This document shows positions 1 to 58,891 of a stretch of DNA of 64,000 bases, piece by piece; positions within the stretch are counted from its first letter, which is position 1, and every line of letters begins with the position of its first letter. The notes under the pieces are model-generated. The model saw only the letters and a program-made list of their open reading frames with translations, did no database searches and was not told the DNA's origin. The stretch spans positions 98,107,604-98,171,603 of the forward strand of contig NC_092383.1 in assembly GCF_030028105.1 (NCBI RefSeq). Reading direction: 5' to 3'. A program made the position numbers and the translations under genes. This DNA comes from Mobula birostris (taxonomy: Eukaryota).

Positions 1-238
1 CTCCGTAGATCATGGATTTCCAGACTGAAGTTCCCAGGATGAAAGGTTATCCGTCGCTTGTACTCGTCAGGACCGAAGTAGCTAACGTTACCCTTCGAGT
101 ACTTCACTATCATGTTTCTGGGTGATACCCGTCTCCACACAACATCAGCAACGTCCGGTCCGACTGGGATCCCAGGATGTAAGGAGACCGAGTGTCCCCG
201 AGCTCTGTTCACGGTGGTCGGGGGAGCCCCAGTCCCAG
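1..238 (-). CDS. IgV-domain exon of a CD2/SLAM-family receptor (gene 1), running off the window start
   Basis: Acceptor ctgtctcctcttgtctcctcAG at 240-239. Phase-1 translation (S)GTGAPPTTVNRARGHSVSLHPGIPVGPDVADVVWRRVSPRNMIVKYSKGNVSYFGPDEYKRRITFHPGNFSLEIHDLR has no stops. It shows the SVSL B strand without Cys, the C-strand Trp, and the YKxRI/NFSLxIxxL motifs typical of CD2/SLAM V domains. N-glycosylation sequons NVS and NFS are present. Confidence 0.85.
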
Positions 239-1367
239 CTGAGGAGACAAGAGGAGACAGTCAGCAGATCAGCTCAGTGACTGGTGGAGGAATCAGAGCT
301 GTGAGAATCATAGATATAGCAACAGGCCGTACGGCCCATCGTCTGTCTCCCAGCCCTGTGAGAGAGCTGGCCCACAGATCCTCCATCACACAGTGAGCCC
401 ATGGGGGGGGTGGGGGAACAGAATGAAGACTCTCTGTACCCCGCCCTGAGGAAGAAATCGCAGCCTGCAGGCGGGGGGGGGGGGGATGTGCTCAGACATA
501 TCCTGGGAAGTTTGGGGGGCTGACACTGGGACACACCTCACTGTGGGTGTGCAGGGGTCAGGGGTCAGGAGATAGAGTGATTAGACTCGAGGTGACCACC
601 ACTCAGCTGGAATTGTCACTGGACCCGGGTCCCCAAACCCTCCTCCAGAGGTGGCTCATCACACCCTGAACCATCCTCGGGAAATGTCCCACCGGGTGCA
701 CCACCCCTCCCCAGTCTGCACTGTCTGAATCTCTCTGGCGTCTGGACCACTCGTGACAGGTGATGAGGAGGGTCCCGGTGAGTCTCTGTCTGTGAGGAGC
801 CCTCCCCGTCTACCTCAGGACCCCGCGTGGACAGTCCGGTGCTACAGGCTTTGGGCAGATTACTGTGGTCCTGGGGGAGGGGGGGGTGGCATGGTCAGAT
901 TTCCCTACGAAGTTCAAGAGGTTGCAGCTCCTTGTGAGTATCTGAAGGGCTGTTCTTCAGCCCCACTGTCCCCGGTGGGGAGGGGAGGAGGTGAGTACAA
1001 TAAAATAATACTAACACCAAACCCCCCCCCCCAACGCAATGGGGTCTAGAAAGAAAGGTCAGAACAACCTGGACTGGATCCAGCTGTTCCCCGTGTGAAG
1101 GGGAGCTGCATCTGTCATCAGCTGGAGACGGTGGTGCTTAGTGGGGCAGGAGGACTCCGGGGGACCCCTCACCATCTGTGCTGGTGTGGGAGAGAGGACA
1201 GGACCGACTTTCCCAGACAGGAGGGGAACCAAGCTGGGTTCCTCACAGCATGGGAATGTGTGGGGACAAGAGACACAAGTGACTGAAGATGCTGGAATAT
1301 GGAGCAATTTTTCAGCAGTTCTTTTGATTTTTGTCATTTTTCTGCCTGAGTTTCAAACCATCAACCA

Positions 1368-1560
1368 CCAGTCTGCCCATCATCCCTTCCTCAGCTGGCT
1401 CCACCAATCATGTGTCAGTCCCTTTCTCACCCCTCCCCCCCATCAATGCCCATCATCCCTTCCTCAGCTGGCTCCACCAATCACATGTCAGTCCCTTTCT
1501 CACCCCTCCCCATGCACATCATCACATCCTCCACTGGCTCCACCAATCAGGTGTCAGCCC
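1368..1560. repeat. Three imperfect copies of a ~65-70 bp pyrimidine-rich unit
   Basis: catcatcccttcctcagctggctccaccaatca...gtcagtccctttctcacccctcccc recurs three times. Confidence 0.8.
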
Positions 1561-2271
1561 CTGCCTCACCCCTCCCTCTTGCCCTTTTCCCTTGGCCCCC
1601 TCCCCTCGATGCCCTCAGTTCAGTTGCCGAGTCCTGATCTGAAATGTCGAACATCCTTCTGCCTCCTCAGATGTTGCTCAGCCAGCTGAGTTCCTCCAGC
1701 AGTTTGTTTTTTTTGCTGGTATGGGAGAGACTGAGGGTGGGGCTGCCCAGTGTTACAGAGAGGCTGGGGTCCTCTCACCCTGTGTACAGGAACCCCCTTC
1801 CCCACCTGTCTTCGGCCCAGGACCCCTGGAGTGTGCAGACTGTTCCTGTGTTACCCCAGAGTGGGACGAGCTCAGGTTGTTACCTCGGAGACAATATCCT
1901 CTTCCCTCATGACTGAGAGTTGGAAAGACGAGGTGTTTGAAGGCACTCCGGAAAATCCACTTCAGCTCAGCTCAGCTCAGAGTCCAAGCCATTTCTAGTG
2001 TCTCTTTCCTACTCGATCCTCCCCTCCTCTCCCCACCCTGAGCGGATCCCACATCGGACTCCACACTATATCCTTCCCCACTCAGGGAATCTGCCCACAC
2101 CCCTTTGTAGTCTCCTGACATCCTTTTCACAACTAACTCTGGAGCTGTGTGTGTGATCAGCACACTTACCAACCGCGCCCTGCTCCCCTGTGTCAGCTGA
2201 GCTGCCAGCCCCCACCCTGGAACACACCAGCCCAACCAAGAAAGGACAGGCTTTTGCCCGCTGACCCCAAT

Positions 2272-2930
2272 CAAAGTTCAAAGGTTCCAAGTACATTTAT
2301 TATCAACTTTTGTGTGCAGTCTACAACCCTGAGACTTGTCTTCTCACAGACAGCCACGAAGCAAAGAAACACCATGGAACCCGTTCAAAGAGAGCATCAA
2401 ACACCCAATGCACCAAAAGAAAGAACAAATCCTGCAAACGGCAAAAAATGAGCGAATAACACAGAGAACATAAAACGTCAAACCACAGGGTCCTTGAAAC
2501 AGTCCAGGACTGTTCAGTTCAGTTCAGTTCAGTTCAATTTAGCACTGTGTTGTTCATTGACTGCAGGCTGCAGAGCCAGACCACCCCAAACAAAATCACA
2601 CAAAATAGCAATAAAAAGAGTAACCAGAAACAAATATACCATGAACTACAGAGTCCAACCCACAAACTGTGTCGATTAAACCTTGCCCAAGGTCTAAGCC
2701 TCTGGCAGTCACCAGTGAGAGAGAGAGAGAGAGAAAGTCCAGTCACAGCCACACACAGGCAAACAGCACTGATCACCTGCTCGCCTTCCGCTCTCGCTCT
2801 CCTTGATTTGAACCTTGCTCGACGCTTTAATCAATGAGTTGGTTGAGAACTGGAACCGATCATGGGTTGGTGCTCTGCCATTAGACCGCATATTCTATTC
2901 TCAACCGCGCCAAATTTCCTCAGAGACAGC
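2272..2930 (-). mobile_element. Non-autonomous LINE-derived interspersed repeat containing (CAGTT)n and (GA)n tracts
   Basis: Begins tcaaagttcaaagg..tacatttattatcaa. The same terminus recurs near 47105 and 48920 in this window. No coding capacity. Confidence 0.5.
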
Positions 2931-3344
2931 AAAAGCACCAGATCACTCAGTCGGCCCAAAACACATTATCATAATATAAATTACAGGCTTCAATCACACA
3001 CAGATTAGTGGTGGAAGCATATTTAAAATAAGCAGTAGACGATCTTCCACCCCTCACACCCGGAATCTGACTCCCCCTCCTCGGACCACTGGTCTATCTC
3101 TTGACTTTACTTCCTTTCAACAAGGGAATGCTTTCAACATGTGAATCACATGAACCTTCTCTGGTCTCTGTTCACGTTTGGATTTGGGACATACCGCAGT
3201 CAGTGGCCCTGTTCTGAAATATGTTCCTATCTTCACATATTTCTCATTACAAAGAAGGAGGCCATTTGGTCCATCAAGTCTGTATGATCTTATCAATCCC
3301 ATTCCCTGTTGCTTCCCTCTAATATAACCTCTTGCACAGACCCA

Positions 3345-3700
3345 GTAACATCCCCCAGTGAAATAGGCCAATGTCAGCATGGTTTCCTTGAAGGAAAGTC
3401 TTGCCTGATGAATCGCTACTAAACAGGACAGATTTCCATGGTAGTAGCATGGATAAAAGACAAGGAGTGGGGAATAAAGGGGGGCTTTACTGGCTGCCGT
3501 GACTACTGGTGTTACGCAGAGTCGGCGTTGGGTTCATTACTTATCCAGTTATGTGTTCACGATCTGAATGATAGAATTGACGGCTTTCTGGCCAAGGTTG
3601 TAAATGATGTCTCAAGATAGCAATGAGCTGGGATTTATGTGGACGTCATGGCTTGTTTTGGGTTTTAGGAACGGGGATGCAGGGGAATTAGGGGGCTTGG
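3345..3700 (+). mobile_element. Degraded CR1 RT fragments
   Basis: ggtttccttgaaggaaagtcttgcctg (GFLxGKSCL) and aatgatctgaatgatagaattgacggc match the CR1 ORF2 copies elsewhere in the window. Confidence 0.6.
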
Positions 3701-4039
3701 AGGAGAGGCCAGAATCTTAAGTCTCCCGCTGTACGATTGAAGGACGGTGACACAGACAGGGGACAACTGCAGGCCAGGCTGACTGTCAGACCAGCAGACC
3801 AACGTGGATGACGGCTGATAGCTCTCTCAAGGTCACCAAGTGGTTGGCAGGTTCCAGGGACAGAGTTCTGTCTGAGCAGGAGAAATGGCATCCAATGATC
3901 CCTAGCTTTACAAATCAGTAAGACCAGAGTGCAAGGCCTAGTATTCAGGGTCCTGTCCTCGTCGAGCCCAGAGTTCGGTGAACAGTGGGTCTTGTGGTCA
4001 ATGCTGAGGATCGAGGCCTAACAGTCAAATTTCAGGAGT

Positions 4040-4345
4040 AGGGGCCTGTCGGCTGGAGCTCCAGATCTACGGATCTCTGCAAGTCCACTGGGGTAATCTG
4101 CATGTCCAGATCCAGATCAGATCTGAGTCTGCTGGGATAATCTAAGGACCAATGTCTGCAAGTCTGGATCCAGATTGAGTCCACCAGGGTAACCTGCATG
4201 TCTGGATCTGAGTCTGCTGGGATAATCAAAGGACCAATGTCTGCATGTCCAAATCCAGATCGAGTCCATGGGGTAATCTGCAAGTCTGGATCCGGATCGA
4301 GTCCATGGGGTAATCTGCAAGTCTGGATCCGGATCGAGTCCACTG
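4040..4345. repeat. Composite tandem repeat (37-bp unit alternating with a longer variant)
   Basis: gagtccatggggtaatctgcaagtctggatccggatc at 4262 and 4299, with variants upstream. Confidence 0.8.
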
Positions 4346-4377
4346 TAGGATGGAGGCTGAAGAACATGGACTGCCTT

Positions 4378-4990
4378 GATCAGAATCAGATTCAGGTTTA
4401 ATATCATCAGCATATGTTGTGAAATTTGTTGTTTTGCAGCAGCTGTACATTGCAAGACATACTGTAATTTTAAAAAAGACAAATTACAATAAGAAATATA
4501 TTTAAAATTAACTTACAGTAAATAAGTAGTGCAAAAAGACAACAGAGAAGAGAAAAAAATACTGAGGTGGTGTTCACGAGGTATTCAGAAATCTGATGGT
4601 GGAGGGGATGAAGCTGTTCCTGAAGTGTTGAGTGTGTGTCTTCAGGCTCCTGTACCTCCTTCCTGAAGTCAATGAGAAGAGCCATGTCCTGGGTGACGGG
4701 GGTCCCAATGGAGAAGATATCCTGGGTGACGGGGGGTCCAAATGGAGGAGTCCGGTATCCAGTTGCAGAGGGAGATACAGAAGCCCAGGTTGATTAGTAC
4801 CAAGGGTTTGATTGTGTTGAACGCTGAGCTGTAATCGATAGGCAGCAACATGACGTAGCTGCTGCTATTATCCAGCTGATTCAAGACCAAGTGGAGAGCC
4901 AGTGAAATTGCATCCTCTGTCGACCTATTATGGCACAGGCAAATAGCAGGGGGTCCACGTCCTTGCTTAGAAAAGAGTTAGAAGACTATG
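4378..4990 (-). mobile_element. Rex1/L2-type LINE remnant (RT piece plus 3' end, internally deleted)
   Basis: Minus ORF 4669-4890 reads ..LLPIDYSSAFNTI..LCNWI, an RT motif. An atcagaatcagattcag tail is at the left end. Confidence 0.7.
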
Positions 4991-5199
4991 TATGTGTGTA
5001 GGTGAGACAGAGAAACTGGGTTTGTTTTGCTTGCTGTGTTCTGTGTTCTGTCGAGCACTGCGGGCATGCTATGTTGATGCAGGAATATGTGGCGACCCTT
5101 GCGGGCTGCCCTCTACATACTCTCGCTGTGTTGGTTGTTGATCCAAATGAGACATTTTACTGTATGTTTCGATGTACTTGTGACAAATCATCTGGAATC

Positions 5200-6025
5200 T
5201 TGATACGTACCGTAGGTAGGTGGAGGGGCAGGTAGCAGGGAGTTTGCAAAAGTGTAGGGAAGGGAATGGCCATACACTTTGGTGGAAGAAATAAAGCCAG
5301 AGACTACTTTCTACACAGGCAATGAATTCAGAAACCGGAGGTGCACAATGACTTGGGACTCTTTGTGCTGGATTCTCTAAAGGGTAACTTGCAGGTGGAG
5401 TCAGAAGCAAGGAAGGCAAATGCAATGTTAGCATTCGGTTTGACAGGACTACAATATAAAAGGAATTCATTGCGCTGACCATATTTGGATTATGGTCAGT
5501 AGTTTTGGCCCACATGTCTAAGAAAGCTGTGCTGGCATTGGAGAGGGTCAGGAGGAGGTTTATGAGAAGGATCCCAGGAATGAAAAGGTTTGCATATTGA
5601 AGATGACTCTGGCACTGTACTTGCTGGAGTTTAGAAGAAGGATGTGGGATCTCATTGAAACCTATTGAATAGGTCTAGATAGAGTAGATTTGGAGAGCAT
5701 GTTTCCATTTTTAGGGAGTCTAGGACCAGAGGACACAGCCTCAGAATACAAGGATGTCCCCTTAGAACAGTGATGAGGAGGAACTTCTTTAGCCAAAGGA
5801 TAGTGAATCTGTGGAATTCATTGCTGTAGACGATTGTGGAGGGCAAATCCTTGGGTATATTTAAAGTGGAGATTGACATGTTCTTAGTTAGTAAGGGTGC
5901 CAGAGTTTACAGGGAGAAGGCAGGAGAATGGGGTTGGGAGGGAAAGTAAATCAGCCGTGGGGGAATGGTACAGCAACTTGAGAGGCCGAATGACCTAATT
6001 CTGTTCCTATGTCTTATGGTCGAAT
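5200..6025 (+). mobile_element. CR1 3' fragment
   Basis: Degenerate ORF2 C-terminus (gtagttttggcc, cagcctcagaatacaaggatgtcccttagaacag) and a CR1 3' UTR ending cctatgtcttatggt. Confidence 0.8.
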
Positions 6026-6124
6026 GCATCCTTTTGCTCCTTTGATAAGAAACACCACACGGGCAAACAGGAAATGGCAGCCAGTGGTTGGAAATAAGTG
6101 AGGAGGCCTCCTAGGGCATCCAAC

Positions 6125-6650: not shown

Positions 6651-6709
6651 GCAGCTGAACACAGAAGATGAGCACTGAGTTGTTCAGAGGAGATTATGAA
6701 TATAACTGG

Positions 6710-12063: not shown

Positions 12064-13494
12064 CCTCCCCCAAAAAGAGAAAATTCTGATCTGTAAGAGT
12101 AAAATTTTAACTGCAGACTTCAATATGTGAAACAATACATTTGCAGTTACCATATAGCATACTACAGACTAATATATCATACTGCAGAAGTGTGTACAAA
12201 TAGTCAATCTCACTCCACTGTTAAAAGTGCATTGCAAGCTTAACATCTAGAAAGACAGTCGGCAATTATATTATCCTTGCCTTTAATGTGAGTTATCATG
12301 AGATCATACTCCTGCAAAATCAAAATCCAATTCAACAACCGTCTGTTCTTTTTTTTTAACTTACTCAAGAACACCAATGGATTATGATCTGTATAAACCA
12401 CAAGTACGTTTGAGCTGGGCAAGCATACACATCAAAATGCTACAAAGCCAAAATAAGTGATAATAATTCCTTCTCGATGGTGGAATAAATTCTTTGATGC
12501 CTGTTCAATTTCTTTGAAAAGTTAGCCACAGGATGGTCAACACTGCTCCTGCAGCTTCATCACTGGCATCCACAGCTATGGAGAATGGCTTTGCAAAGTC
12601 AGGTGACTTGAGCATAGGTTGGTGACAGAAGATGGCTTTCAATTTATCAAACGCCTCCTGACAAGGCTCCGTCCAAACAAACTTTCCACGCTTCTTCAAG
12701 AAGTTAGTCAATGGGAGAGCAATATCATCAATGTTTTTACAGAACTTGCGATAATATCCGACCATTGCCAGGAATCTCTTAAGAGCTTTTATACCGGTTG
12801 GAATGAGAACCTCAGAAATTGTCTGAACTTCTGCCTGAACAGGAGCCACCCTGCCCTGACCTCCAACATAACCGAGATAGGTCACAGTGGCATGGCCAAA
12901 TTCACTCTTAGCTAAGTTAACTGTAAGATTGGCCTTTGAGAGCCTGTCAAACAGCTCTTCCACTGCAGAGATATGGCCTTCCCATGTGTCATTCCCTGTG
13001 ATCAAATCATCAATATAGGCATTTGTGTGTTCTAACTCCTGAATTACAGAATTAACCATTCTCTGGAATGTTCTTGGAGCATTTTTCATTCCAAATGGCA
13101 GAACATTGTATTCATACAATCCTGAAGGTGTTACAAATGCAGAAATTTCTCTACCTCTATCCGTTAATGGAACACACCAATACCCTTTTAACAGATCGAT
13201 TTTTGTAAGAAACTTAGCTTTTCCAACCTTGTCTACACAATCATCCACTCTAGGGATGGGATAATCATTTGTTTTTGTTATAGCATTCACCTTTCTGTAA
13301 TCAGTGCAAAACCTGATACTACCATCTGCTTTAGGTACCATAACACAAGGTGAGATTCAATTTGAAGTAGAATGCTTAATAATACCATTTTCTTACATAT
13401 ACTCAATTTCTTGTTCAGCAAGTCTACATTTTTCAATACTCCTGTGATGCGGATGCTGTTTTATAGGTTTTGGCATCACCGACATCTACATCAT

Positions 13495-14236
13495 TAGGAA
13501 AAGGGGAGGTGCAGCGAGACCTGGGTGTCATTATACACCAGTCATTGAAAGTGGGCATGCTGGTACAGCAGGTGGTGAAAAAGGCGAATGGTATGCTGGC
13601 ACTCATAGCAAGAGGATTCGAGTACAGGAGCAGGCAGGTACTACTGCAGTTGTACAAGGCCTTGGTGAGACCACACCTGGAGTATTGTGTGCAGTTTTGG
13701 TCCCCTAATCTGAGGAAAGACATCCTTGCCATAGAGGGAGTACAAAGAAGGTTCACCAGATTGATTCCTGGGATGGCAGGACTTTCATATGATGAAAGAT
13801 TGGATTGACTCAGCTTATACTCTCTGGAATTTAGAAGATGGAGGGGGGATCTTATTGAAACGTATAAAATTCTAAACAGATTAGACAGGCTAGATGCAGG
13901 AAGATTGTTCCCGATGTTGGGGAAGTCCAGAACGGGGGGTCAAAGTTTAAGGATAAAGGGGAAGCCTTTTAGGACCGAGATGAGGAAAATCTTCTCCACA
14001 CAGAGAGTGGTGAATCTGTGGAATTCTCTGCCACAGGAAACAGTTGAGGCCAGTTCATTGGCTATATTTAAGAGGGAGTTAGATATGGCCCTTGTGGCTA
14101 AAGGGATCAGGGGGTATGGAGAGAAGGCAGGTACAGGGTTCTGAGTTGGATGATCAGCCATGATCGTACTGAATGGCGGTGCAGGCTCAAAGGGCCGAAT
14201 GGCCTACTCCTGCACCTATTTTCTATGTTTCTATGT
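13495..14236 (+). mobile_element. 5'-truncated CR1 inserted antisense into the Gmr1 pol
   Basis: RPHLEYCVQFWSP..., tail (TTCTATGT)2, and ATCAT duplicated at 13490-13494 and 14237-14241. Confidence 0.9.
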
Positions 14237-17200
14237 ATCATGTGATGCTACTGTGGTTCTTTTTGAAATATCAGGGTATAAATCGCTAAATTTCATGATC
14301 AACAGCTTCATCTGCTGCCGCTGCTGTGGCTGTCAATGAGCCAATTTCTCATCAAGACCTTCCAAAACAGTCGAATTTGTCAATCTGGCTGAAATAATGT
14401 TTGATTTAAAATAGGCCTCAGATGGAAGCGCTGGTGAATTTCCAGAGAGTTCAGATTCAGTGTTATTGACAACAACCATCACAGCTGCTATTTGTTTCTC
14501 ATGATACAGTTTAAGCATGTTTACGTGACAAAGCTACTTGGCCTTCGTCTATCTGGTATTTTGATGACATAATCCACATCATTGACTTTAGACACAATTT
14601 TTTAGGGACCATGAAACTTAGCTTGCAGAGGGTTCATTTGCACAGGGAAAAGAACCAATACCTTATCTCCTGGCTTGAATGACCTCATTCTGGCTTCCTT
14701 ATCATAACAAGTTTTCATTCTTTCCTGGGCTAATTTTAAATTTTCCCTTGCTAAGTTGCAAGTCCTTTGCAATCTGTCTTTGAATTTTAAAAGATAGTCC
14801 AACAAATTAATATGCAGGTCATTATTAACCCACTGCTCTTTTAATAATGCCAAAGGTCCTCGGACCTGGTGTCCAAACACAAGTTCAAAGGGGCTAAAGC
14901 CTAGGGACTCTTGCACTGACTCCCTTACTGCAAATAGAAGCAAGTGAACTCCCTCATCCCAATCCTTCTCATTTTCAATACAAAATGTCCTCATCTGGTT
15001 TTGAGGCTAGAATGAAATTTTTTTAAGGCCCCTTGGGATTCTGGGTGGTATGCAGATGATGTAATTTGTTTGGTTCCCAGTTTGTAAACTATTTGCTGGA
15101 ATAATTCTGACATAAAAATTACTTCCTTGATCAGACTGGAGTTCTTTAGGCAAAACAAATAGGGTGAAAAACTTTCTGAGAGCCTTTGACATGGTTGGAG
15201 ATTTTATATTCCTGAGAGGTATTGCTTCCAGGAATCTAGATGCTGTACACATAATGATTAGCAAATACTGATGGCCGGCTTTAATCTTGGACAATGGGCC
15301 AACACAATCCACAATAACTTTTGCAAAGGCTTCACCAAATGCAGGAATAGGGTGCAGTGGGGCCACTGGGGTGAGCTGATTAGGTTTACCCACAACCTGC
15401 CAAGTGTGACAAGCCCAGCAAAATGTCGCAACATCTTTCCTCAAACTAGGCCAGAAGAATTGTTTCAAAACCCTGTCCACAGTTTTGTTCACACCCAGAT
15501 GGCCACCCAAGGGCATACTATGGGCCAAAGTTAAAATCTCATTCCTATAGACTCTAGGAACCACAACCTGGTGAACAATTTCCTATTTCTCGCTTGCAGG
15601 AATATCAGATGGTCTCCACTTCCTCACTAACACCCCATCCTTAAAATAATACGAAACTGGTACTTTCTCAATCTCATCACCTGGGAGATCTTTTTCTCTC
15701 AATGCAACAATCCCAGGGTCTCTGGTCTGTTCTGCCATGAACTCCGTCCTGGAAAAAGACAAATCTTTATTGTCAGTCCTAACACAAGGATCATGGTCCA
15801 ATAATGAAAGAAGGAAAGTGACTGCAAGTCATCAAAACCTGGGTAGCGGAACTATGCTGCACAGAACTATCTGCGTTTGCAAGCTTCTCAGCCATAGCTC
15901 GAGTTATTGCACAGGATGGATACATGTTACAAACCATCTTTGGATCATCAGTGGTTGGCTTAGTTATCAGCTGCACAGCAGGGACAACTTTGCCACCTGC
16001 TAGGTCATTCCCTAACAACAAAGAAACACCTTACACCAGTAAACTGGGTCGTAGTCCTATCTTAACAGGTCCTGAAACTAACTCTGACTTCAAAATTACC
16101 TTGTGCAGAGGTACAGAAACAATATCATCCCCAATGCCTTGAATAAGATTTACCTCACCAATGGCAGTTTCATCACTAAACTTTAGAACACTGTCTAACA
16201 AGAGTGATTGAGAAGCCCCAGTATCTTGAAGAATTTTCACTGGTACCGGTGATGACCCTTCATTCACTGAAACAAGCCCCTCTGACACAAAAGGCATGAA
16301 CTCTTTCCTGACCAGGTCAGGCGTCTCAGCCTTTGACAGAGCTTCATCAGAAGGTCCGGAACCCTATGGGTTTATAGTTGTTTCAACATATTGAACACAG
16401 GCATCTGGAACTGCCTCCTTTTCCTTCCTCTTCTTTAGGAGGAAACAGTTAGCTATAACATGTCCAGCTTTCCTGCAATAGTGACAAATAGGACCAGAAT
16501 GCCTCCCTTCATCTTTACCTTTGTCACTAGTCCCAGTTTTAATTTCTGGTTTACCCTGACTATCCATACTACTCTTTTGGAAAGTCTTACTCAGGGTAAA
16601 CTTAAACTTGTGGGTTAAGGCAAACTCATCTGCTAATTTAGCAGATTTTTGCCAAGTGGCCGCATCCTTCTCATCTAAATATGTCTTTATGTCATTATGG
16701 ATGCACCTTTGAAATTCTTCAATTAAAACCAACTCTTTCAATTTGCTGAAATCATCGTTCACATTTTTAGATGTGCACCATTGTTCAAAACACATAGACT
16801 TCTCATAAGCAAATTCCACAAGTCTGGTTCACAGATTTCCTCAAATTCCTAAACCTTTGCCTATCAGCTTTAGAACCAGTTCATAGGCTTTAAGCACAGC
16901 TTGTTTTACTGTCTCATAGCTAGCTGCATCATCAACTGGTAGGGAAGAATAAGCTTGCTGAGCTTTACCTTTAATTACACTTTGCAACAGGAGAGCCCAA
17001 CACCCCCTTGGCCACTGTAGGCTCTGAGCAACTTTCTCAAAATGCTGAAAATATTTGTCAGCCTCAGCCTCATCAAATGGAGGGACCAATTTAACTTCCC
17101 GACTGGCAACAAACTTATCCCTAGATCCAGAACTCCCTTTGACTCTCGAGCCTTAACTTCTCTATCTCAAACCGCCTTTGTCCTCTAATTTAACTTTCTC

Positions 17201-17551
17201 CTGCTCAAACTTTAAATGTTCCAGCCATAACTGGAGCTCAGGGTTATCTGGTTTATTTTCAGGAAACAATTCTAACACCGTCTCTTCAAACACCTTTGTA
17301 GATACATAAATCTCAGCTACTCTCCTCTGAATCTCTGCCTTTCTCATAGCCAACTTTACCGCAGTAAGTTCCAGCTTTTCAGCAATGAGCAGCAAGTCTT
17401 TCTTTTTGGCTTCCACTAATGCCTCAGAGGTTGGTGATATCATAAATGTATCAATATCCATTGCTGCTGGTTTCCAAACACAAGTCAATCAAAAGGGAAG
17501 TAACCAATCAAATTGATAATCAATCAATCAATAAGCTCCAATTTTGTTCAA

Positions 17552-17569: not shown

Positions 17570-17574
17570 ATTTA

Positions 17575-18192: not shown

Positions 18193-18232
<40 letters not shown>

Positions 18233-23975: not shown

Positions 23976-24565
23976 AGGGACAGGTGTGTGACAGTGTACC
24001 CAAGTAACTGGGCGTGGGGGGGACAGTGTACTCAGTGACTGGGTGTGGGGACAGTGCACACCAGTGACTGTGTGTGGGGGGACAGTGTGCCCCAGTGACT
24101 GGGTGTGTGGGGGTGACAGTGTATCCCAGTGACTGGGTGTGTGGGGGGGGACAGTGTACCCAGTGACTCGGTGTGGGGACAGTGCACACCAGTGACTGTG
24201 TGTGTGGGGACAGTGCACACCAGTGACTGGGTGTGTGGGGGTGACAGTGTATCCCAGTGACTGGGTGTGGGGGAAACGTGTGCCCAAGTGACTGGGTGTG
24301 TGGTGACAGTTCACACCAATGACTAAGTGTGGGGGTCAGTGTACTCAAGTGACAGGGTGTGTGGGGAACAGTGTACCCCAGTGACTGTGGGTGTGGGGGG
24401 GACAGTGTATCCCAGTGACTGTGTGAGGGGACAGTGTATCCCAGTAACTGGTTGTGTGGGTTCAATGTACCTTTGTGACTCGGTGTCTGTGGGTTAGTGG
24501 CCCAAATGACTGTGTGTGGAGGGAGGGACAGTTTACCCCAGTGACTGGTTGTGTGGGGACAGTCC
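23976..24565. repeat. ~30-bp GC-rich minisatellite (GGGACAGTGTACCCCAGTGACTGGGTGTGG), short array
   Basis: About 19 imperfect units; same unit as 55445-57900. Confidence 0.9.
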
Positions 24566-28078: not shown

Positions 28079-31000
28079 TAAATGTTGGGGCTCATGGGAT
28101 ATGTTCTGATTTTGAGTTTAAGTGCTGGTAATTGCCATTTTGATTTGGATAAGGGGAATACCCGATTTTTTTTTGGTTTGATTGCTGTGTGTGTTGTATT
28201 CAGCAACAATGGATATTGACAGGTTTTTGAAGACGCCTGACTCGGGATTTTTAGAGAATGCGAGAAAACCTGAGGTATTGGAGATTGCTAAAAAGTTGGA
28301 TATTAAAGGAATTACGAGAAATTCTACCAAGGCTTTCATACAAAGAAAAATTGCTGAACATTATATTACATTGAATTTATTTGATGAGGAGGTGTTAGAT
28401 AAGTTTCCAATGAGTAATCTGGAAATGCATTTACATCTTGAACAAATAAAGTTAAAGCAATTAGAAGCTGATTTGGAAAAGAGTCGGTTAGAAGCTGTAA
28501 ATAAACAGAAGGAATTCGAGGCTATGGAGGCTATTAAAAAAAGGGAATTCGAAGAAAGAGAAGCCCTTAAAAAAAGAGAATTTGAAGAAAGAGAAGCTCT
28601 TAAAAAAAGTGAGTTTGCAGAAAGAGAAGCTGAAAACCAGAGGAATTCCGAGTTAGAGATACAGAAATTAAAGTTCGAGAGTCAGTCTTCTGGTTCTATG
28701 AAACAGTTTATTGCTAGTCGTGAGGTTATTTTGGCTCCTCCATTTAATGAAGGTGCTGTGGACACATTTTTCCAACATTTCGAAACAGTTGCTCTGAGTT
28801 TAAAGTGGCCGAAAGAGCAATGGCCAGTGGTGTTACAAAGTGTAATTAAAGGCAGGGCACAACAAGTTTATACAGCTTTAAATGCTGAACAAACACTGGA
28901 TTATGATATTGTTAAACGGCACATATTAAAGGCACATGAGATGGTTCCAGAAGCGTATAGAGAAAGATTTAGAAGTTTGAAGAAATCGGTGGAAAAAACT
29001 TACGTGGAATTTGCCTATGAGAAATCTATGTGTTTTGAGAGATGAGTTTCCTCTAAAAATGTGAATGGGGAGTATAATTAATTAAAAGAGTTGATTTTGC
29101 AGAAGGAATATAAAAGAAGCATTCCCGTTGAAGTGAGAACATACTTAAATGAATGGGACACTGCTACATTGCAGGAGACTGCTAAGTTGGCTGACGAGTA
29201 TGTTTTAATTCACAAGAATAAATTTTCTCCAGGTAAAATTTTTAAAAGGAAAACTAGCACAGAGAGTCAAAGTAAATCAGACATTAAATCTGAAGTTAGT
29301 GAGAAAAGTAAGGATGAAGGGAGACATGAAGGAAAGACATTTTGGTCTTATTTGTAATTATTGTAAGAAACCTGGACATGTAGTAGCTAATTGCTTCCGA
29401 TTGAAACGGAAAGAGAAACAAGTGGCCCCAGATGCTTGTGTGCAGCATATTGAAAAACCTGTAAAATCACAGGGTTTAGAAAATATTGATGAAGGTGTGT
29501 CAGAGTCTGACCAAGTTGAGAAGGAATATGAGGTTTTTATAACAGAAGGATTTGTATCCTTGAAAGAAGGATCCAATGCAGTACTGATAGGGATACTTAG
29601 AGATACTGGAGCTTCACAATCACTAATATTAGAGAGTGTGCTAAGGTCTAGTGATGAGTCTGACATTTGTGAGGTAAACTAAATAAGAGGGGTAGGGAGT
29701 GCCCTTATGCCAGTACATTTACATAGAGTAAATTTAAGGTCAGGATTAGTTACAGGGGTTGTTAAAGTAGGGCTACAATCCAGTTTACCTGTGAATGATG
29801 TTTCTCTTTTGTTAGGGAATGATTTAGCAGATGGACAAGTTTTTCCTGAAGTGCATTTGACAATAAATTCAAATTCTGAGGAACCACAGAGGGATTCTAA
29901 CACAGATTCGTCCTGTGTTGTAACAAGAGCTATGGCTAAAAAGACTGATGTAAAGGATGAGGTTGTTACCCATGACAGTTCCAATCAGGATTCAAGTATT
30001 GAGGATGTATCAGAAACTTTCTTACCTACATTATTTGATCAGGATTTTGGGGGTAAGCCTGACCAGGAAGATTTGTCTTTATCTCGGAAGGAGATGATAG
30101 CAGAGCAGGGTAGAGATCCTGAGATAGTTAAATTAAAAGAACAAGCTCTTCCAGATAGTGAAATTGAAAAAGTACCGGTTGGATATTATTTTGAAAAGGG
30201 GGTATTAATGAGAAAGTGGAGATCGCCTACAATTCCTGCTTGTGAGGAATGGGAAGTTAATAATCAGGTAGTAGTTCCTAAAATTTACCGAAATGAGATT
30301 TTAACTATGACTCATAGTATTCCTTTGGGTGGCCATTTAGGTGTAAAGAAAACTATGCACAAAGTTTCTAAACATTTTTATTGGCCTAGTTTAAGACAAG
30401 ATGTGGTGACATTTTGTAAAATGTGTCATACGTGTCAAATTGTTGGTAAACCTAATCAGGTTACTCCAGTGGCCCCACTGCAACCAATTCCAGTATTTGG
30501 TGAGCCGTTTTCAAAAATCATTGTAGACTGTGTAGGCCCTTTGCCAAAAACTAAAACTGGACATCAATATTTATTAACTATTATGTGTACAGTGTCTAGG
30601 TATCCAGAAGCCGTACCTCTTAGGAATATAACAGGCGAAACTGGGACAAAGGTTCTTATAAAATTCTTCACTTATTTTGGGTTGCCTAAGGAAATACAAT
30701 CAAATCAAGGTAGTAATTTTATGTCTGGGTTGTTTCAGCAGATAGTTTATAAACTGGGACCAAAGCAGATTATTTCCTCAGCCTATCATCCAGAATCACA
30801 AGGAGCCTTGGAGAGAGTTCATTCTACACTAAAAACTATGATTAGGACATATCGTGTGGAAAATGAAAAGGACTGAGATGAAGGTATACATATACTACTT
30901 TTTGCAGTAAGGGAGGCAGTACAGGAATCATTAGGTTTTAGTCCTTTTGAACTTGTGTTTGGACATAGAGTTCGAGGACCTTCAGCTTAGTTGAAGGAAC

Positions 31001-32542
31001 AGTGGATTAATAAAGAAGTGCACACTAGTTTGTTAGATTATGTTTTGAAATTTAAAGACAGATTGTACAAAGCTTGTAGCTTGGCCAAGGAAAATTTAAA
31101 GTTAGCTCAAGAGAAGATGAAGACGTGGTATGATAAGGAAGCTAGGATGAAGTCATTTAAGTCTGGAGGTAAGGTGTTGGTTCACTTCCCAGTGCAAACA
31201 AATGCATTGCAAGCCAAATTCCATGGTCCTTATGAGATTAAATCTAAGGTAAATGATGTGGATTATGTGGTAAAAATCCCAGATTGGAGAAAGACAATAC
31301 AGCTGTGTCATATAAATATGATAAAACCGTATTATGAGAGAGAAGTTGCTACTATGACTGTGGTGATCGATAATGAGTCTGATCTTGATGAAAACTTACT
31401 GGAGGATTCATCCGAAACTCATGTTAAACCCAACATTATTTCAGCCAGGTTACCAAATTCAAAAATTCTGGAAAATATTGATGAGAAATTAGCTCATTTA
31501 CAGCCAGAGCAGAGAGAACAGATGAAACAGTTAATTTTTAAGTATAGAGATTTATTTCCAGACATCCCTAGAAGAACCACCGTAGCTACACATGATGTAG
31601 ATGTTGGAGATGCAAAACCCATAAAACAACATCCATATCGAATGAACAGGGAAAAATGTGAACTTGCTGAACAAGAAATTAAGTATATGTTAGAGAATGA
31701 TATTATTAGACATTCTAATTTGAATTGGAGTTCACCATATGTTATGGTGCCTAAGCCAGACAATAGTATTAGGTTTTGTACGGATCACAGGAAGGTGAAT
31801 GCTGTGACAAAGACTGATGCATATCCAATCCCTAGGGTAGATGATTGTGTGGATAAAGTTGGACAGGCCAAATTCGTTACAAAAATTGATATATTAAAAG
31901 GTTATTGGTGTGTTCCATTGACGGATAGAGGTAGAGAGATTTCAGCATTTGTAACCCCATTTGGGTTATATGAATATAATGTTCTTCCATTTGGGATGAA
32001 GAATGCACCAGGTACTTTTCAGAGGATGATTAATAGCATGATTCAGGGATTAAAAGATACAGATGCCTATATTGATGATTTGGTTACAGGAAATAACATG
32101 TAGAAAGCACATATTATGGTGGTGGAGAAATTATTTGAGAGACTTTCAAAAGCTAACTTAACTATTAACTTAGCTGAAAGTGAATTTGGTCATGCCACTG
32201 TGACAGTTAAGGAAAAAGGTTAGGGAAATTAGACTCCAATTTAATACCACAGTTTAATGTTACAGGAGTACAATATTTTGATCACTCTTATTAAGGGTAA
32301 AGACAATGTTTGTCAATCAATGATTGTTTGTCTAGATGTTAAATGTACAATGAAAATTTGTTTTTTTGGAGCAATATTTTAACATTTGTAACACTCCTAC
32401 TGTACATTAGTTTGTAAAGGGCTGAAAGATAAGATTGTATGTATTGTGTATTTTGTAAATTTTATACATTTGTATTTTTTTTTGTATAAACTGTTAAAAT
32501 TTTGTTCTTCAAGAGACCAACATTTTTTTTTCTGGAGGGAGT

Positions 32543-39182: not shown

Positions 39183-39189
39183 GGTCAGA

Positions 39190-51153: not shown

Positions 51154-51233
51154 CAGGGGATCCCAACCTTCTTCATGCCATGGACCAATACCATTACGGA
51201 AGGGGTCCATGGACCCTGGGTTGGGAACCCCTG
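51154..51233. mobile_element. 80-bp hAT/Charlie-like MITE
   Basis: TIRs CAGGGGATCCCAACC / GGTTGGGAACCCCTG, flanked by near-duplicate 8-mers ATGTCAAG and ATGTCGAC. Confidence 0.7.
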
Positions 51234-52060: not shown

Positions 52061-52149
52061 ACTAAGATAAGATGTTAGGAGTGTCAGTGTCGTTCTGTAA
52101 TTGAAACTTGTCCAAGTATGCCCCAAGGTATTGTGGGAGGCCAGGGAAG

Positions 52150-52720: not shown

Positions 52721-53011
52721 TGAATCAGATGGAAATTGAGATTTATTTGTTATTAATCGCGTTTATTGAAACATGCAGTGAAATGCATCATTTAGATTAA
52801 CAACCAACACAACGTGAGGATGTGCTGAGGGCAGCCCGCAAGTGTCGCCACAAGTTCTGGCGACAATATTGCATGCCCATAATGTCTTGTAGAACAACAT
52901 GTAACCAACATAGAACTGGGAAAAACAGCAAAAAAAAACCCTTTCCCAACCCCCACTCCCACACACAGACAGGTTTCCCTCCCCAGGGCAGACCACCTCG
53001 TGGCCTCCGAC

Positions 53012-53360
53012 AGCCAGACTGTGTTCCCAGACTCTCAGACATGGGAATTATGACGTCCAGACTGTGTCCCCAGACTCTCAGACATGGGAATTATGACGTC
53101 CAGACTGTGTCCCCAGACTCTCAGACATGGGAATTCTGACCTCCAGACTGTCCCCAGACTCTCAGACATGGGAACTCTGACCTCCAGACTATGTCCCCAG
53201 TCTCTCAGACATGGAAACTCTGATCTCCAGACTGTGTGCCCAGACTCTCAGACATGGGAATTCTGACCTCCAGACTGTGTCCCCAGACTCTCAGACATAG
53301 GAATTCTGACCTCCAGACTGTATCCCCAGATTCTCAGACATGGAAACTCTGATCTCTGGG
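53012..53360. repeat. 43-bp tandem repeat, about 8 copies
   Basis: cagactgtgtccccagactctcagacatgggaatt(a/c)tgac(g/c)tc at 53015, 53058, 53101... Confidence 0.92.
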
Positions 53361-53904
53361 CTTCAACACCAGGACTCACCAATCAACAGCCACTGACCTC
53401 AGGGCTTGCTGAATGACCTTGGACCTCCAATCCTGGGACTCACTGACCTCGGGAATCACTGGCCCTTGTTCTTGGGGATCACTAGCCTCTAACCTCAGAG
53501 CAGCCCAAACTGATTGTCCAGTTCCTTCCCCTAACTCCTCGCTTTCTGCCCTTGACCTCTCACTCCCCTCACCAGGTCACTACTGCTAACCTAGCCTGAA
53601 ACTTCCCACCCTGTCACCATTAACTGTCCCTGCGAACCTAAACCACAAAGTGACAGGAACATCACAACTCGGTGCCACCTTGTAAAAAATAATGAGAGCA
53701 GTCGTGATGTCATTTTACACCTGGACAAGTCATAGATGAGACCTTTTCCGGCCATTACGCCACATCCTGGCTGTGAACCAGTGTTGAGGGTTGATTGCCT
53801 GAGGTGGGGTAGCAGTGAGAAAATGGACGCTGGGCACAAACTCAATTTTTCAATTAATAATAAACTACTGGATAAGTGGGTGTCAACAGGCCAATTTTGG
53901 ACAG

Positions 53905-54190
53905 GGTAAGTTACAGACAAGGGAGATTATGGACTGGGGAAGTGGGTACAGACGGTTCGATTACTGATGGGGTTGTGGCTGCAGACGGGTCAATTGCGGA
54001 TGGGGGAGTGGGTGCACACAGGTCGATTACTGATGGGGTTGTGGGTGCAGACGGGTCTATTATGGATGGGGTTGTGGGTGCAGACAGGTTAATTACAAAC
54101 GGGGGTTGTGGGTGCAGACAGGTTGATTATGGACAGAGGTGTGGGTACACATGGAATGATTACGGACAGGGGAGTTTGTACAGACGGAGC
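53905..54190. repeat. 33-bp degenerate tandem repeat
   Basis: gggtgcagacgggtcgattactgatggggttgt variants, about 8 copies. Confidence 0.8.
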
Positions 54191-54379
54191 TCACAAACAA
54201 AGTCGATTAGCTAATATCCAACACTTACAAAGTCCAGCAGGAATGTGCAGCCACATTGTTGTCCCATTAGTCCCACCACAACCTTCAACTTCCCGACTCA
54301 AATCCCACAAACCTTTCCACAACTTGAAAAACCTCGATTCCTATGATGAACACACACAATAGCACCAATACTAGCACAC

Positions 54380-54720
54380 CAACGTTCCTGCCAGTGGTGG
54401 TCTGATCGAGGACCCCACCTCACTCCTCACGGGCTTTACTACAGCTATCAGAAAATACTGGACAGCCGCAAATAGACTCAGAAGTCGACATGCCAAAACA
54501 GCGCAAATTCTGCACCCATGGGGCATTCGACAAACCCCAGCTTTCCCCTGTGGTGCCACGTCCCAGGACACACTCCACCTGGTCCCAACATGCCCTCTCA
54601 ACAAGGTCCAAGACGGCTTTGCCGTGGTCCATTGAGTTGGAGGACTGGCTTGACAGAAACCAATTAGACGTGTGAAGAGAAAAACAGCTGCCATACGAAA
54701 CAACATCAACAGCCACAACC
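54380..54720 (+). mobile_element. RTE-X-like LINE 3' end, antisense in the presumptive 3' UTR of gene 2
   Basis: Plus frame YWTAANRLRSRHAKTAQILHPWGIRQTPAFPCGATSQDTLHLVPTCP, followed by ccatacgaaacaacatcaac tail. Confidence 0.65.
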
Positions 54721-54835
54721 ACGGGACACAGTGGATCTCCGATATCTCCCCACCCACCCTCGGCTCCCCTTGAGGGTCAGTGCCATCCTTGTGCCGGAGC
54801 GAAGGGAGGGAGGGTCCGTCCTAGACTGCGGGACG

Positions 54836-54943
54836 TTATCTATGGGCTGCTTCCCCAGCCGATCCAGGGGGTGGTCTGGCACGGAACGTGACTGCAGCGT
54901 ACACTGTGTGGGGAGTCTCAGGGTGAACCTCAGGATCAACAAA
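54836..54943 (-). CDS. Terminal cytoplasmic exon of gene 2 with ITSM TVYAAV
   Basis: Acceptor cttttcttctgttgcAG. Phase 0: FVDPEVHPETPHTVYAAVTFRARPPPGSAGEAAHR-stop (TAA at 54838-54836). TxYxxV motif at 54907-54890. Phase matches the preceding exon. Confidence 0.8.
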   Translation of the reverse strand, partial: FVDPEVHPETPHTVYAAVTFRARPPPGSAGEAAHR

Positions 54944-55444
54944 CTGCAACAGAAGAAAAGCCTGTCAGTCTCACACCAGTTCAGGGTTACACAGAGAAGG
55001 ACATGGAGACAGGGACAAAGCGAGAGAGGACTTCAAGGAGATGGAACACCCAGAGTTAGGAGACACGGGACTGGACATACGGAGAGATGGACAGGGCACA
55101 TCGGGAGAAAAACAAATGCAGAGAAACACACAATGGGACACAGACTCAATAGTTCCAGTCACCCCCACATCACCAATCACAAAGTCCAAACACCGACACT
55201 GACCCAACATCAACACAACTTTCAATCTGAACAAACTGCTGACCAGTACAAACATTACATCCCGGTCTGATCATCAGAAATTACACAGAACTGGACATTA
55301 ATGCAGAAGATTGTGCAGATGCTGGAAATGCACATAGCCGGACACAAACTGCTGGACGATCTCTGCAGGTCAGGCAACATCCATAGAAATGAAAAAACAG
55401 TTGATGTTTCAGTCTGAGACCCTTCATCAGGACTGAGCCATATA

Positions 55445-57900
55445 TGGGGTGGACGATAGTGCACCCCAGTGACTGGGTGTGTGGGGGATAGTGTATCCCA
55501 GTGACTGTGTGTGTGAGGGACAATGTATCCCACTGAGTGGGTGTGTGAAGGGACAGTGTACCCCAGTGACTGGGTGTCTAGGGACAGTGTACGCCAGTCA
55601 CTGGGTGTGTGTGGGACTGTGTACCCCAGTGACTGGGTGTGGGGGGACAGTGTACCCCAGTGACTGGGTGTCTGGGGACAGTGTACCCCAGTGACTGGGT
55701 GTCTGGGGGATAGTGTATCCCAGTGACTGTGTGTGTGAGGGACAATGTATCCCACTGAGTGGGTGTGTGAAGGGACAGTGTACCCCAGTGACTGGGTGTC
55801 TAGGGACAGTGTACGCCAGTCACTGGGTGTGTGTGGGACTGTGTACCCCAGTGACTGGGTGTGGGGGGACAGTGAACCCCAGTAACTGGGTGTGGGGGGA
55901 CAGTGAACCCCTGTGACTGGGTGTGGGGGGCAGTGTACCCCAGTGACTGGGTGTGGGGAGACAGTGTACCCCAGTGACTGGGTGTGTGGGAAGACAGTGT
56001 ACCCCAGTGACTGAGTATGTGGGGGGACAGTGTACCCCAGTGACTGGATGTGTGAAGGGACAGTGACTGGCTGTGGCAGACAGTGTGCCTCAGTGACTGG
56101 GTGTGTGGGGGGGAACAGTGCACCCCCTGGTGACAGGGTGTGTGTGGGACAATTTCCCACAGTGACTGGATGTGTGGGGACAGTGTACCCCAGTGACTGA
56201 GTGTGGGGGGACAGTGAACCCCAGTGACTGGGTGTGGGGGGACAGTGTACTCCAGTGACTGAGTATGTGGAGGATAGTGTATCCCACTGACTGGGTGTGT
56301 ATGGGACAGTGTACCCCAGTGACTGGGTGTGAGGGGGACAGTGCACCCCGGTGACAGGGTGTGAGGGGGACAGGTTCCCACAGTGACTGGATATGTGGGG
56401 GACAGTGTACCTCAGTGACTGGGCATGTGTGGAGGACAGTGTACCCCAGTGACTGGGTGTGGGGGGACAGTGAACCCCAGTGACTGGGTGTGGGGGGACA
56501 GTGTACCCCAGTGACTGGGTGTGGGGGGGGACAGTGTATCTCAGTGACTGGGCCTGTGGGGGACAGTGTACCTCAGTGACTGGGTGTGTGTGGGACAATG
56601 TACCCCAGAGACTGGGCCTGTGGGGGACAGTGTAACCCAGTGGCTGGGTGTGGGGGGGGGACAGTGTATCTCAGTGACTGGGTGTGTGGGGGACAGTGCC
56701 CACTGCTGACTGGGTGTGGGGGGGACAGTGCACCCCAGTGACTGGGTGTGGGGTGGGACATTGCACCTCGGTGACAGGTTGTGTGTGGGACAGTTTCCCC
56801 ACAGTGACTGGATGTGTGGGGGACAGTGTACCCCAGTGACTGGGTGTGGGGGGACAGTGTACCCCAGTGACTGGGTGTGGGGGGGGGCAGTGTATCTCAG
56901 TGACTGGGCCTGTGGGGGACAGTGTACCTCAGTGACTGGGTGTGTGGGGGACAATGTACCCCAGTGACTGGGCCTGTGGGGGACAGTGTAACCCAGTGGC
57001 TAGGTGTGGGGGGACACAGTGTATCTCAGTGACTGGGTGTGTGGGGGACAGTGCCCACTGCTGGCTGGGTGTGTGGGGGACAGTTCACCCCAGTGACTGG
57101 GCCTGTGGGGACAGTGCACCCCAGTGACTGGGTGTGGGGTGGGACATTGCACCTCAGTGACAGGTTGTGTGTGGGACAGTTTCCCCACAGTGACTGGATG
57201 TGTGAGGGGCAGTGTACCCCAGTGACTGGGTGTGGGGGGGACAATGTATTCCAGTGACTGGGTGTGTGGGAGTCAGAGCAGCCCAGTGTATATGGGGTGA
57301 CAGTGTACCTCGGTGACTGGGTGAGTGGGGACAGTGTACTCCAGTAACTGGGTGTGGGGGGAACAGTGCATCCCGATGACAGGGTGCATGTGGGACAGTT
57401 TCCCACAGTGACTGGATGTATGAGGGACAGTGTACCTCAGTGACTGGGTGTGTGGGGGGATAGTGCACCCCAGTGACTGGGTGTGTGGGGGGATAGTGCA
57501 CCCCAGTGACTGGGTGTGTGGGAAGACAGTGCCCGCTGCTGACTGGGTGTTTGGGGGACAGTGCACCCCAGTGACTGGGTGTGTGAGGGGACAGTGTATG
57601 CCATTTACTGTGTGGGAGGGGACAGTGTACCTCAGTGACTGGCTGTGGCAGACAGTGTGCCCCAGTGACTGGGTGTGGGGGGGACAGTGCACCCCCTGGT
57701 GACAGGGTGTGTGTGGGACAGTTTCCCACAGTGACTGGATGGGTGGGGACAGTGTATTCCAGTGACTGTGTGTGCGTGGGAGACAGTGCACCCCAATGTA
57801 TATGGGGGAGACAGTGTACCCCAGTGACTGGGTGTGTGGGGGACAATTCAGCCCAGTTACTGGGTGTGGGGTGTGGGGTACAGTGTATGCAAGTGACTGG
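55445..57900. repeat. ~2.45-kb array of the ~30-bp minisatellite in the last intron of gene 2
   Basis: GGGACAGTGTACCCCAGTGACTGGGTGTGG variants, roughly 80 units, with higher-order duplications. Confidence 0.95.
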
Positions 57901-58089
57901 GCGCATGAGGGGGTTGATGTGCCCTGACAACTGGGCACGTGGGGGTGGGGTGGGGGTGGTGTTGGGCATGTGGAGTGATTGGTTGGTATGGCACAGTGAT
58001 GGGTGATGGTGATGCTGATGGTGGTGTCAGTGGCCTGAGTGATTCAGGCTGCCTGTTCCCTGTCTCTGGCTTATCGTGTCTGCCATTAC

Positions 58090-58178
58090 CCTCTCGTTCC
58101 CCTTGGGGGGCTGCCGGCCAGTACGACTCTTTGCATTCCACCGAATATTTGCGTAAACAGTGTTCTCCACTGCCGGGT
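58090..58178 (-). CDS. Cytoplasmic exon 1 of gene 2 with ITSM TVYANI
   Basis: Acceptor ctctactttctgtcccacAG, donor AGG|GTAATG. 89 nt, phase 1-0: (D)PAVENTVYANIRWNAKSRTGRQPPKGNER. TxYxxI motif at 58161-58144. Confidence 0.8.
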
Positions 58179-58343
58179 CTGTGGGACAGAAAGTAGAGGT
58201 GAGAGGGTCCATACGGAAACCCTTCCCCACTGTACCTTATCTCACCCCTCCCTCCAATGTCATCATTTTCCTCGACCTACCCTGCCCCACCCATTCTCCC
58301 TCCCTCCCCCCAACCACCAGCCTCACGGATTGGATCCACTTGC

Positions 58344-58487
58344 CTTCAGTGCCTGAAGACGTTTCTTTTCCAGCAGCTCTTCTCCTCCATGTGACCAAGA
58401 GAATCACAATGAGAGTGGAGACCAGGAGGGCCCCCAGTACGGACAGTCCGATTACCAGGGTCGGGCTCAAGGACACAGGATCTGCAT
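58344..58487 (-). CDS. Transmembrane exon of SLAM-family gene 2
   Basis: Acceptor cctctccgctttccAG. 144 nt, phase 1-1: ADPVSLSPTLVIGLSVLGALLVSTLIVILLVTWRRRAAGKETSSGTE, a hydrophobic helix followed by an RRR stop-transfer. Ends at AAG|GCAAGT (GC donor). Confidence 0.85.
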
Positions 58488-58807
58488 CTGGAAAGCGGAG
58501 AGGATTCTGCAATTAATCCCAACCTCACACTCCCAGAGACGCAGAACCAATGGATTCATTCCATCCCATCTCAGGTCCAATAATATTCCTTTTTTCCCCA
58601 AACACCATACATTAATCGCCTCTAATCACCCCATCTCATTCCCCTCTCCTATCTTCTCAGTCCCCCTCTATTCCCCTCGCATCACTCCCCTCCAACCCCT
58701 CCTACACTATGGTGCTCCCATGATACACAAAGGGAGATTTTTGACTAATTTGGCAGAGTTTGTGATGGTGATTAAGGAAATGGCCGGGGAATTACACAAA
58801 TACTTAC

Positions 58808-58891
58808 TTGTCTGCATTCCCAAACAAAAGCACAAACTATCCCGGACACACTGGAGACCCAGTGGCCTATTGATGGTATTTGTAGTGGAAA
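58808..58891 (-). CDS. Candidate 84-nt membrane-proximal exon of gene 2
   Basis: Acceptor ggtgtatttcAG and donor CAA|GTAAGT. Symmetric 84 nt, open in phase 1 (STTNTINRPLGLQCVRDSLCFCLGMQT), 320 nt upstream of the TM exon. No recognisable homology. Confidence 0.3.

Follow-up and report, generated by a model that had tools for sequence, protein, structure and literature searches.

Mammalian SLAM receptors tune the interactions of T, B, and natural killer (NK) cells. Among the proteins closest to them, CD48 is anchored by glycosylphosphatidylinositol (GPI), the long, proline-rich tail of CD2 is not known to contain ITSMs (immunoreceptor tyrosine-based switch motifs), and neither are the short tails of mammalian SLAMF8 and SLAMF9. 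Four cysteines in the C2 domain are the pattern of the CD2 family, whereas the C2 domains of CEACAMs have two. Here, we describe a 64-kb stretch of DNA, herein called the window, from the giant manta ray Mobula birostris (RefSeq assembly GCF_030028105.1, contig NC_092383.1, positions 98,107,604 to 98,171,603). It probably covers the point at which two minus-strand genes from a large family of SLAM/CD2-type receptors, herein named gene A and gene B, adjoin head to tail. Both are additional members of a known family and are already computer-predicted in public annotation.

In a literature search, elasmobranch SLAM genes were met in passing mentions only. A slamf gene is drawn on the major histocompatibility complex (MHC) maps of white shark and sawfish (PMC10751288), and Slamf6 is a marker of T follicular helper (Tfh)-like cells in nurse shark (PMC10529500). 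The same search found nothing on a teleost SLAM family with ITSMs or on elasmobranch SH2D1A. The present description documents two family members at exon resolution, one of them a predicted V-only receptor with two switch motifs. The manta SLAM-type family is large and tandemly arrayed, and its description provides background for the study of early lymphocyte co-receptor evolution.

Exon architecture of gene A and gene B

Exons were located by a six-frame scan of the 64 kb for TxYxx[IVL] and by direct reading of the sequence, followed by comparison with gene models. Both genes lie head to tail on the minus strand, and the window spans the junction between them. From gene A it contains the 3′ part, meaning the stalk, the transmembrane (TM) exon, and two tail exons; from gene B it contains the 5′ part, consisting of the leader and the IgV. 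All six receptor exons are open and have phase-compatible sites (exon boundaries are marked below by a slash).

The models of gene A are the isoforms X1–X3, of which P0056 is the M. birostris RefSeq model "SLAM family member 8-like isoform X2." The stalk mini-exon (59456-59418; 39 nt, phase 1 at both ends, acceptor tcacag, donor G/gtcagt) encodes (D)SFKESTHIVDRT and is identical to residues 237-249 of P0056; it is found in isoforms X1 and X2 and is absent from X3. It is followed by the TM exon (58487-58344; acceptor ccag, entered and left in phase 1), which encodes (D)ADPVSLSPTLVIGLSVLGALLVSTLIVILLVTWRRRAAGKETSSGTE, is likewise identical to P0056, and ends in a GC donor, G/GCAAGT. The orthologue models P0061, P0113, and P0115 retain the junction ...SSGTE/DPA... 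formed at this exon, and RefSeq models from four ray species agree in it. Located at 58178-58090, with acceptor cacag and donor AGG/gtaatg, cytoplasmic exon 1 carries TVYANI at 58161-58144 and matches P0056 exactly. Cytoplasmic exon 2, the last coding exon (54943-54836; acceptor ttgcag), carries TVYAAV at 54907-54890, ends with the stop codon TAA at 54838-54836, and is an exact match to the C terminus of P0056. From the TM exon into the tail the phases are 1-1, 1-0, and 0, all of which are compatible. The remaining part of the gene lies outside: tblastn with 118 family proteins found no gene A IgV or IgC2 within 59.5-64 kb, and the leader, IgV, and IgC2 exons are therefore placed beyond position 64000. 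As a whole, gene A is predicted to be a type I membrane protein built from a leader, a disulfide-less IgV, a four-Cys IgC2, a short stalk, a TM helix, and the tail.

Some further sequences near these exons resemble coding elements. A strong competing GT donor, TCC/GTGAGG, is situated in the region 58326-58344, 18 nt downstream of the GC donor; its use would shift the frame with loss of both ITSMs, and the models of the four ray species keep the GC-site junction. The minus-strand segment 58856-58891 is exon-like, with a good acceptor tttcag, the reading (x)STTNTINRPL, and a weak donor G/GTCTCC. It is used by no fetched gene model and matched by none of the family proteins in tblastn. By eye, it loosely resembles the Ser/Thr stalk, DSTTVPTSRVNPT, which in gene B takes the place of the C2 domain. 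The segment is possibly a relic, or else an alternative exon through which gene A would gain a V-only isoform. The motifs TVYEAV and TLYSAL at 51142-51107 were rejected, with a stop codon directly upstream and neither splice context nor a protein match.

Gene B is represented by P0008, a 255-residue RefSeq/UniRef model on the chromosome of the window with a gene span of 57 kb. It was retrieved by phmmer from 1.84 billion representative proteins with the 79-codon IgV piece as query. The leader exon (23255-23195) reaches from the ATG to the donor T/gtgagt in phase 1, encodes MITGPLLICSCLTLSISVFT, and matches residues 1-20 of P0008 exactly. The IgV exon (238-1; acceptor cctcag, phase 1) is cut by the window start after its first 79 codons, and this piece is 99% identical to residues 21-99 of P0008. 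Leader and IgV are joined in phases 1-1 across intron 1 (239-23194, minus strand), which measures ~23 kb, contains a Ty3/gypsy element (~12.2-17.5 kb) and fragments of long interspersed nuclear elements (LINEs), and has its splice implied by P0008. The B strand of the IgV contains no cysteine (GHSVSLHPGI), and the conserved tryptophan is present (VVWRR). The F strand lies past the window edge, where P0008 reads ...DSGDYEVMF..., with YEV instead of YxC. Pfam assigns a V-set domain to the IgV piece; taken alone, these 79 residues give weak matches, namely 0.006 for V-set in Pfam and 0.44 for CD2 in the PDB.

The TM and tail of P0008 are near-copies of the gene A TM and tail at 58-54 kb, and this model too carries TVYANI and TVYAAV, 36 residues apart. 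Gene B is thus predicted to encode a shorter receptor, consisting of an IgV, a Ser/Thr stalk, a TM helix, and a gene A-like tail without an IgC2. V-only orthologues with the same type of stalk, TM, and tail are predicted in the stingrays Hemitrygon akajei and Hypanus sabinus; hence the gene B form is not a one-off artefact. Among the ray genera sampled, this V-only receptor with two ITSMs is predicted in three, Mobula, Hemitrygon, and Hypanus.

An earlier reading of this DNA, made without database searches and herein called the sequence-only reading, had proposed five minus-strand exons with good splice sites and matching phases. Their coordinates could be re-derived, and the peptides agree exactly or near-exactly with P0056 and P0008. 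All five are real; a sixth coding exon, the stalk mini-exon outside the span considered at the time, had been missed. The end of that span at position 58891 belongs to an exon of no fetched gene model. The proposed absence of cysteines from the IgV can be seen in the window for the B strand, whereas for the F strand it is read from P0008 beyond the edge. The tail with two ITSMs had been recognized correctly, the motifs being TVYANI and TVYAAV. An ectodomain of IgV plus IgC2, which had been expected for the receptors, applies to the gene A model; the gene B model and its stingray orthologues possess the IgV only. The distance between the two exon groups, given as ~31.5 kb of mostly transposon and satellite DNA, amounts to 31.6 kb (54836 to 23255) and has the composition described.

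Family assignment and rival explanations

To assign the V domain, the V domains of 29 relatives were aligned, and the resulting profile was run against all solved structures (PDB). The B- and F-strand cysteines are absent across the 29 domains—with scattered cysteines in a few sequences. G15, W35, L73, and D82 do not vary, and the customary DxGxY motif is present. In the profile search, CD48 ranks first over the full domain (5e-17 and 9e-17), and SLAMF6 (2e-11), CD84 (2.5e-11), and CD2 (4e-11) follow, then 2B4 and CD58. CEA is the fourth match with 9.5e-15, but this value is summed over seven domains. A single V sequence finds CD48 (2.4e-4), SLAMF6, CD84, and CD2 as full-domain matches. CEACAM N-domain entries are absent from the best 60 matches of both the profile and the single sequence. 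A second profile, restricted to the N-terminal 68 V positions, was made to drop the generic C-terminal half that draws I-set domains. Its ten best matches are CD2, CD48, SLAMF6, or CD84 only, with CD2 leading at 1.4e-5, and no CEACAM occurs in the best 60 of its 71 matches.

The fold searches are consistent with this assignment. The AlphaFold model of the V domain has a mean predicted local distance difference test (pLDDT) score of 86. Searched against Swiss-Prot with Foldseek, it returns only family members among the first 12, namely SLAMF8 at the top and then 2B4, CD48, Ly-9, CD2, SLAMF9, and CD84, and CEACAMs are missing from the best 30. Against solved structures, 2B4, CD48, and CD84 are mixed with nectin-1 and CD166. 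With gene A modeled in full, the first matches are CD84, SLAM, CD2, SLAMF8, SLAMF6, and SLAMF7, and the top 30 of the Swiss-Prot search are again without a CEACAM. Sequence identity to SLAM receptors in the structural alignments is ~17-27%. The Pfam family Receptor_2B4 scores above the gathering threshold in the relative P0025 and below it in P0008.

The C2 domain of gene A, encoded outside the window, contains the invariant cysteines C150 and C218 as well as C144 and C199, which are conserved to at least 90%. In the tail, TVYANI and TVYAAV fit the ITSM consensus TxYxxV/I/L (PMC3958483), with one motif per exon and the tyrosines 36 residues apart. Motifs paired at the same distance recur in the relatives P0022, P0023, P0025, and P0028.

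By analogy with mammalian SLAM, the IgV of gene A or gene B would bind, on a second leukocyte, the same receptor or a relative from the family. Once phosphorylated, the tyrosines of TVYANI and TVYAAV would recruit SH2 proteins, meaning adaptors of the SAP/EAT-2 type or phosphatases of the SHP/SHIP type, and the receptor could thereby toggle between activation and inhibition. For both genes, the ligand, the binding of adaptors, the cell type, and the expression are what we infer from the mammalian receptors.

Several points weigh against the assignment to the SLAM/CD2 type. The C2 domain by which canonical SLAM receptors are defined is absent from gene B, and the splicing of the exons of both genes rests on RefSeq models and junction conservation. 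phmmer with the V piece lists 41 proteins, and the ten whose source was looked up are all from rays; hence profiles or structure are required to connect the family with mammalian SLAM. Other points lead toward the CEACAMs, which also combine a disulfide-less N-terminal IgV with an NPVS-bearing C2 and ITIM/ITSM tails (ITIM, immunoreceptor tyrosine-based inhibitory motif), and of which homologues have been claimed from skate expressed sequence tags (PMC3628338). If the genes belonged to this family or were closest to it, their SLAM-like names would be annotation artefacts. A few relatives are indeed named automatically as CEACAM5-like (one relative) or HEPACAM2-like, and the first non-elasmobranch match of the family profile is a CEACAM5-like protein of pipefish (2e-13). 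In a language-model search, a CEACAM19 cluster—V-only plus TM, as is gene B—ranks third, beside CD2. The C2 profile of the relatives fits the C2 domains of CEA and CEACAM1 better than SLAMF6, which ranks behind them (best single-domain E value of 0.0026 for CEA/CEACAM1 and 4e-4 for SLAMF6; ~1e-11 for CEACAM1 when summed over domains), and other I-set domains are matched better than SLAMF6 as well. The multidomain match of CEA in fourth place of the V profile adds to this. Despite these resemblances, membership of or closest kinship with the CEACAM family is quite unlikely. Structures consisting of a CEACAM N-domain only are missing from the best 60 V-profile matches, the listed matches of the N-terminal profile contain no CEACAM and are led by ten of CD2, CD48, SLAMF6, and CD84, and neither Swiss-Prot fold search has one in its top 30. 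In addition, four cysteines are conserved in the ray C2, which is the pattern of the CD2 family, and the tail presents two ITSMs, as opposed to an ITIM with an ITSM or an ITAM (immunoreceptor tyrosine-based activation motif).

According to another idea, which we regard as unlikely, the ray family joins a CD2/SLAM-type V and an ITSM tail with a CEACAM-like C2 sequence, includes V-only receptors with two ITSMs, and stands near the common root of CD2/SLAM and CEACAM; the V-only form with two ITSMs could then be one without a mammalian SLAM counterpart. If true, the elasmobranch genes could show how two receptor families with a disulfide-less V diverged. It is very unlikely that one or both copies are nonfunctional, with gene B decaying after the loss of its C2 exon, or with the GC donor of gene A unused and the nearby GT donor causing the frameshift. 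Both genes are swamped by transposons, gene B with a first intron of 23 kb in a gene span of 57 kb, and the GC donor does have a strong GT donor close by. On the other hand, all six window exons are open and phase-compatible, H. akajei and Hy. sabinus have predicted V-only orthologues that share the stalk, TM, and tail, and models from four species agree in the SSGTE/DPA junction. Moreover, working GC donors usually read G/GCAAGT.

Family size and the DNA around the exons

A profile search of a clustered protein collection yielded 96 proteins, nearly all from rays, skates, sawfish, and sharks; two fish proteins come from outside the elasmobranchs. Most of the 96, including dozens of elasmobranch relatives, are automatically named SLAM family member 5/8/9-like, Ly-9-like, CD48-like, or SLAM-like. 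In the manta, the 99.8-Mb chromosome of the window bears at least 15 protein clusters of the family and two other chromosomes bear four more, giving a total of at least 19. Gene A and its neighbors carry consecutive RefSeq accession numbers. A tree of the ray V domains is poorly resolved: the manta paralogues group together with weak support, which fits recent duplication or gene conversion, and orthology of A-type versus B-type genes is not settled by it. Among the stingray relatives, P0001, P0003, P0016, and P0047 show two to three tandem disulfide-less V domains or up to four C2 domains, although these models are possibly fused.

Neighboring CD2/SLAM-family genes in a cartilaginous fish, as the sequence-only reading had put it, agree with the V profile, the fold searches, and the clusters on the chromosome. 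It had also foreseen that no specific orthologue can be assigned and that the family is little characterized in this lineage, and the literature mentions it in passing only. A best match to CEACAMs, named at the time as the outcome that would speak against the family, did not emerge for the V domain from the profiles, the single sequence, or the fold searches. The cluster is not "hidden," however, in that both genes are RefSeq models and dozens of elasmobranch relatives bear SLAM-type names.

Apart from the stalk mini-exon, tblastn with the 118 family proteins and Pfam on open reading frames (ORFs) revealed no further receptor exons in the window. The DNA in between was classified by Pfam on ORFs and by Tandem Repeats Finder and consists of LINE reverse transcriptases, Ty3/gypsy pol, and satellites of 32, 43, and 58 bp. 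Herein, the intergenic spacer between gene A and gene B (23256-54835; 31.6 kb) contains LINE and Ty3/gypsy remnants in addition to satellites. The window is rich in transposons throughout, with ORFs on both strands that match the reverse-transcriptase, endonuclease, integrase, and RNase H families of Pfam. An Rfam scan of the window gave zero matches.

Its largest satellite has a unit of 32 bp and fills most of the intron between the gene A cytoplasmic exons (55458-57901; ~77 copies by Tandem Repeats Finder). This G-rich repeat, with a unit of ~AGTGTACCCCAGTGACTGGGTGTGTGGGGGAC, is also found at 23988-24563, 0.7 kb upstream of the gene B leader. It yields long repetitive pseudo-ORFs on the minus strand (…HTQSLGYTVP…) that can be mistaken for genes.

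A Ty3/gypsy-type long terminal repeat (LTR) retroelement with gag-like, integrase, reverse-transcriptase, and RNase H regions is present in two copies of opposite orientation, one within gene B intron 1 (12200-17500, minus strand) and one in the spacer (28180-32100, plus strand); the frames are interrupted in both. The N termini of P0096 and P0101, manta RefSeq models named "CD48 antigen-like," match the gag-like region of this element at 37-44% identity, rather than a receptor exon. The matches are located at 17240-17461 on the minus strand and at 28209-28424 on the plus strand, which suggests that these predicted gene models begin in transposon sequence.

Comparison with known receptor systems

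In their build, gene A and gene B hold nothing unexpected for the SLAM/CD2 type, and both are already contained in automatic annotation. Compared with CEACAM1 and other CEACAMs, the ray receptors share the disulfide-less N-terminal IgV, the C2 motif ...C(E/Q)xxNPVS, and tyrosine motifs in the tail. They differ in that their V is not preferentially CEACAM N-like, their C2 has four cysteines, and CEACAMs do not appear in the top 30 of the Swiss-Prot fold searches.

CD48 and CD2 are the best sequence matches of the V profiles (CD48 with 5e-17 for the full domain and CD2 with 1.4e-5 for the N-terminal half). Unlike these two, the ray genes encode a TM helix together with ITSM tails. SLAMF8 and SLAMF9, from which the RefSeq name of gene A is derived, are of similar overall size, and SLAMF8 is the top fold match of the V domain. 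Gene A, however, has two ITSMs, and the automatic name is therefore no sign of orthology.

The mammalian SLAM receptors with ITSMs—SLAMF1/CD150, CD84, Ly-9, 2B4/CD244, NTB-A/SLAMF6, and CRACC—are distinct from the manta genes in some respects. Gene B has no IgC2, the ray C2 is closer in sequence to CEACAM and I-set domains, and the ray family is much larger. The stingray relatives with several V or C2 domains are far from the mammalian V-C2 build, for which Ly-9 reads V-C2-V-C2. Mammalian SLAM receptors are nevertheless the best fold matches, albeit without one-to-one orthology. They exhibit the same type I build with a leader, a disulfide-less IgV, and one TM helix, and with the gene A model they have four cysteines in the IgC2 in common. 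As in the manta, two TxYxxV/I motifs of the tail are placed on separate exons, and the genes are clustered in tandem.

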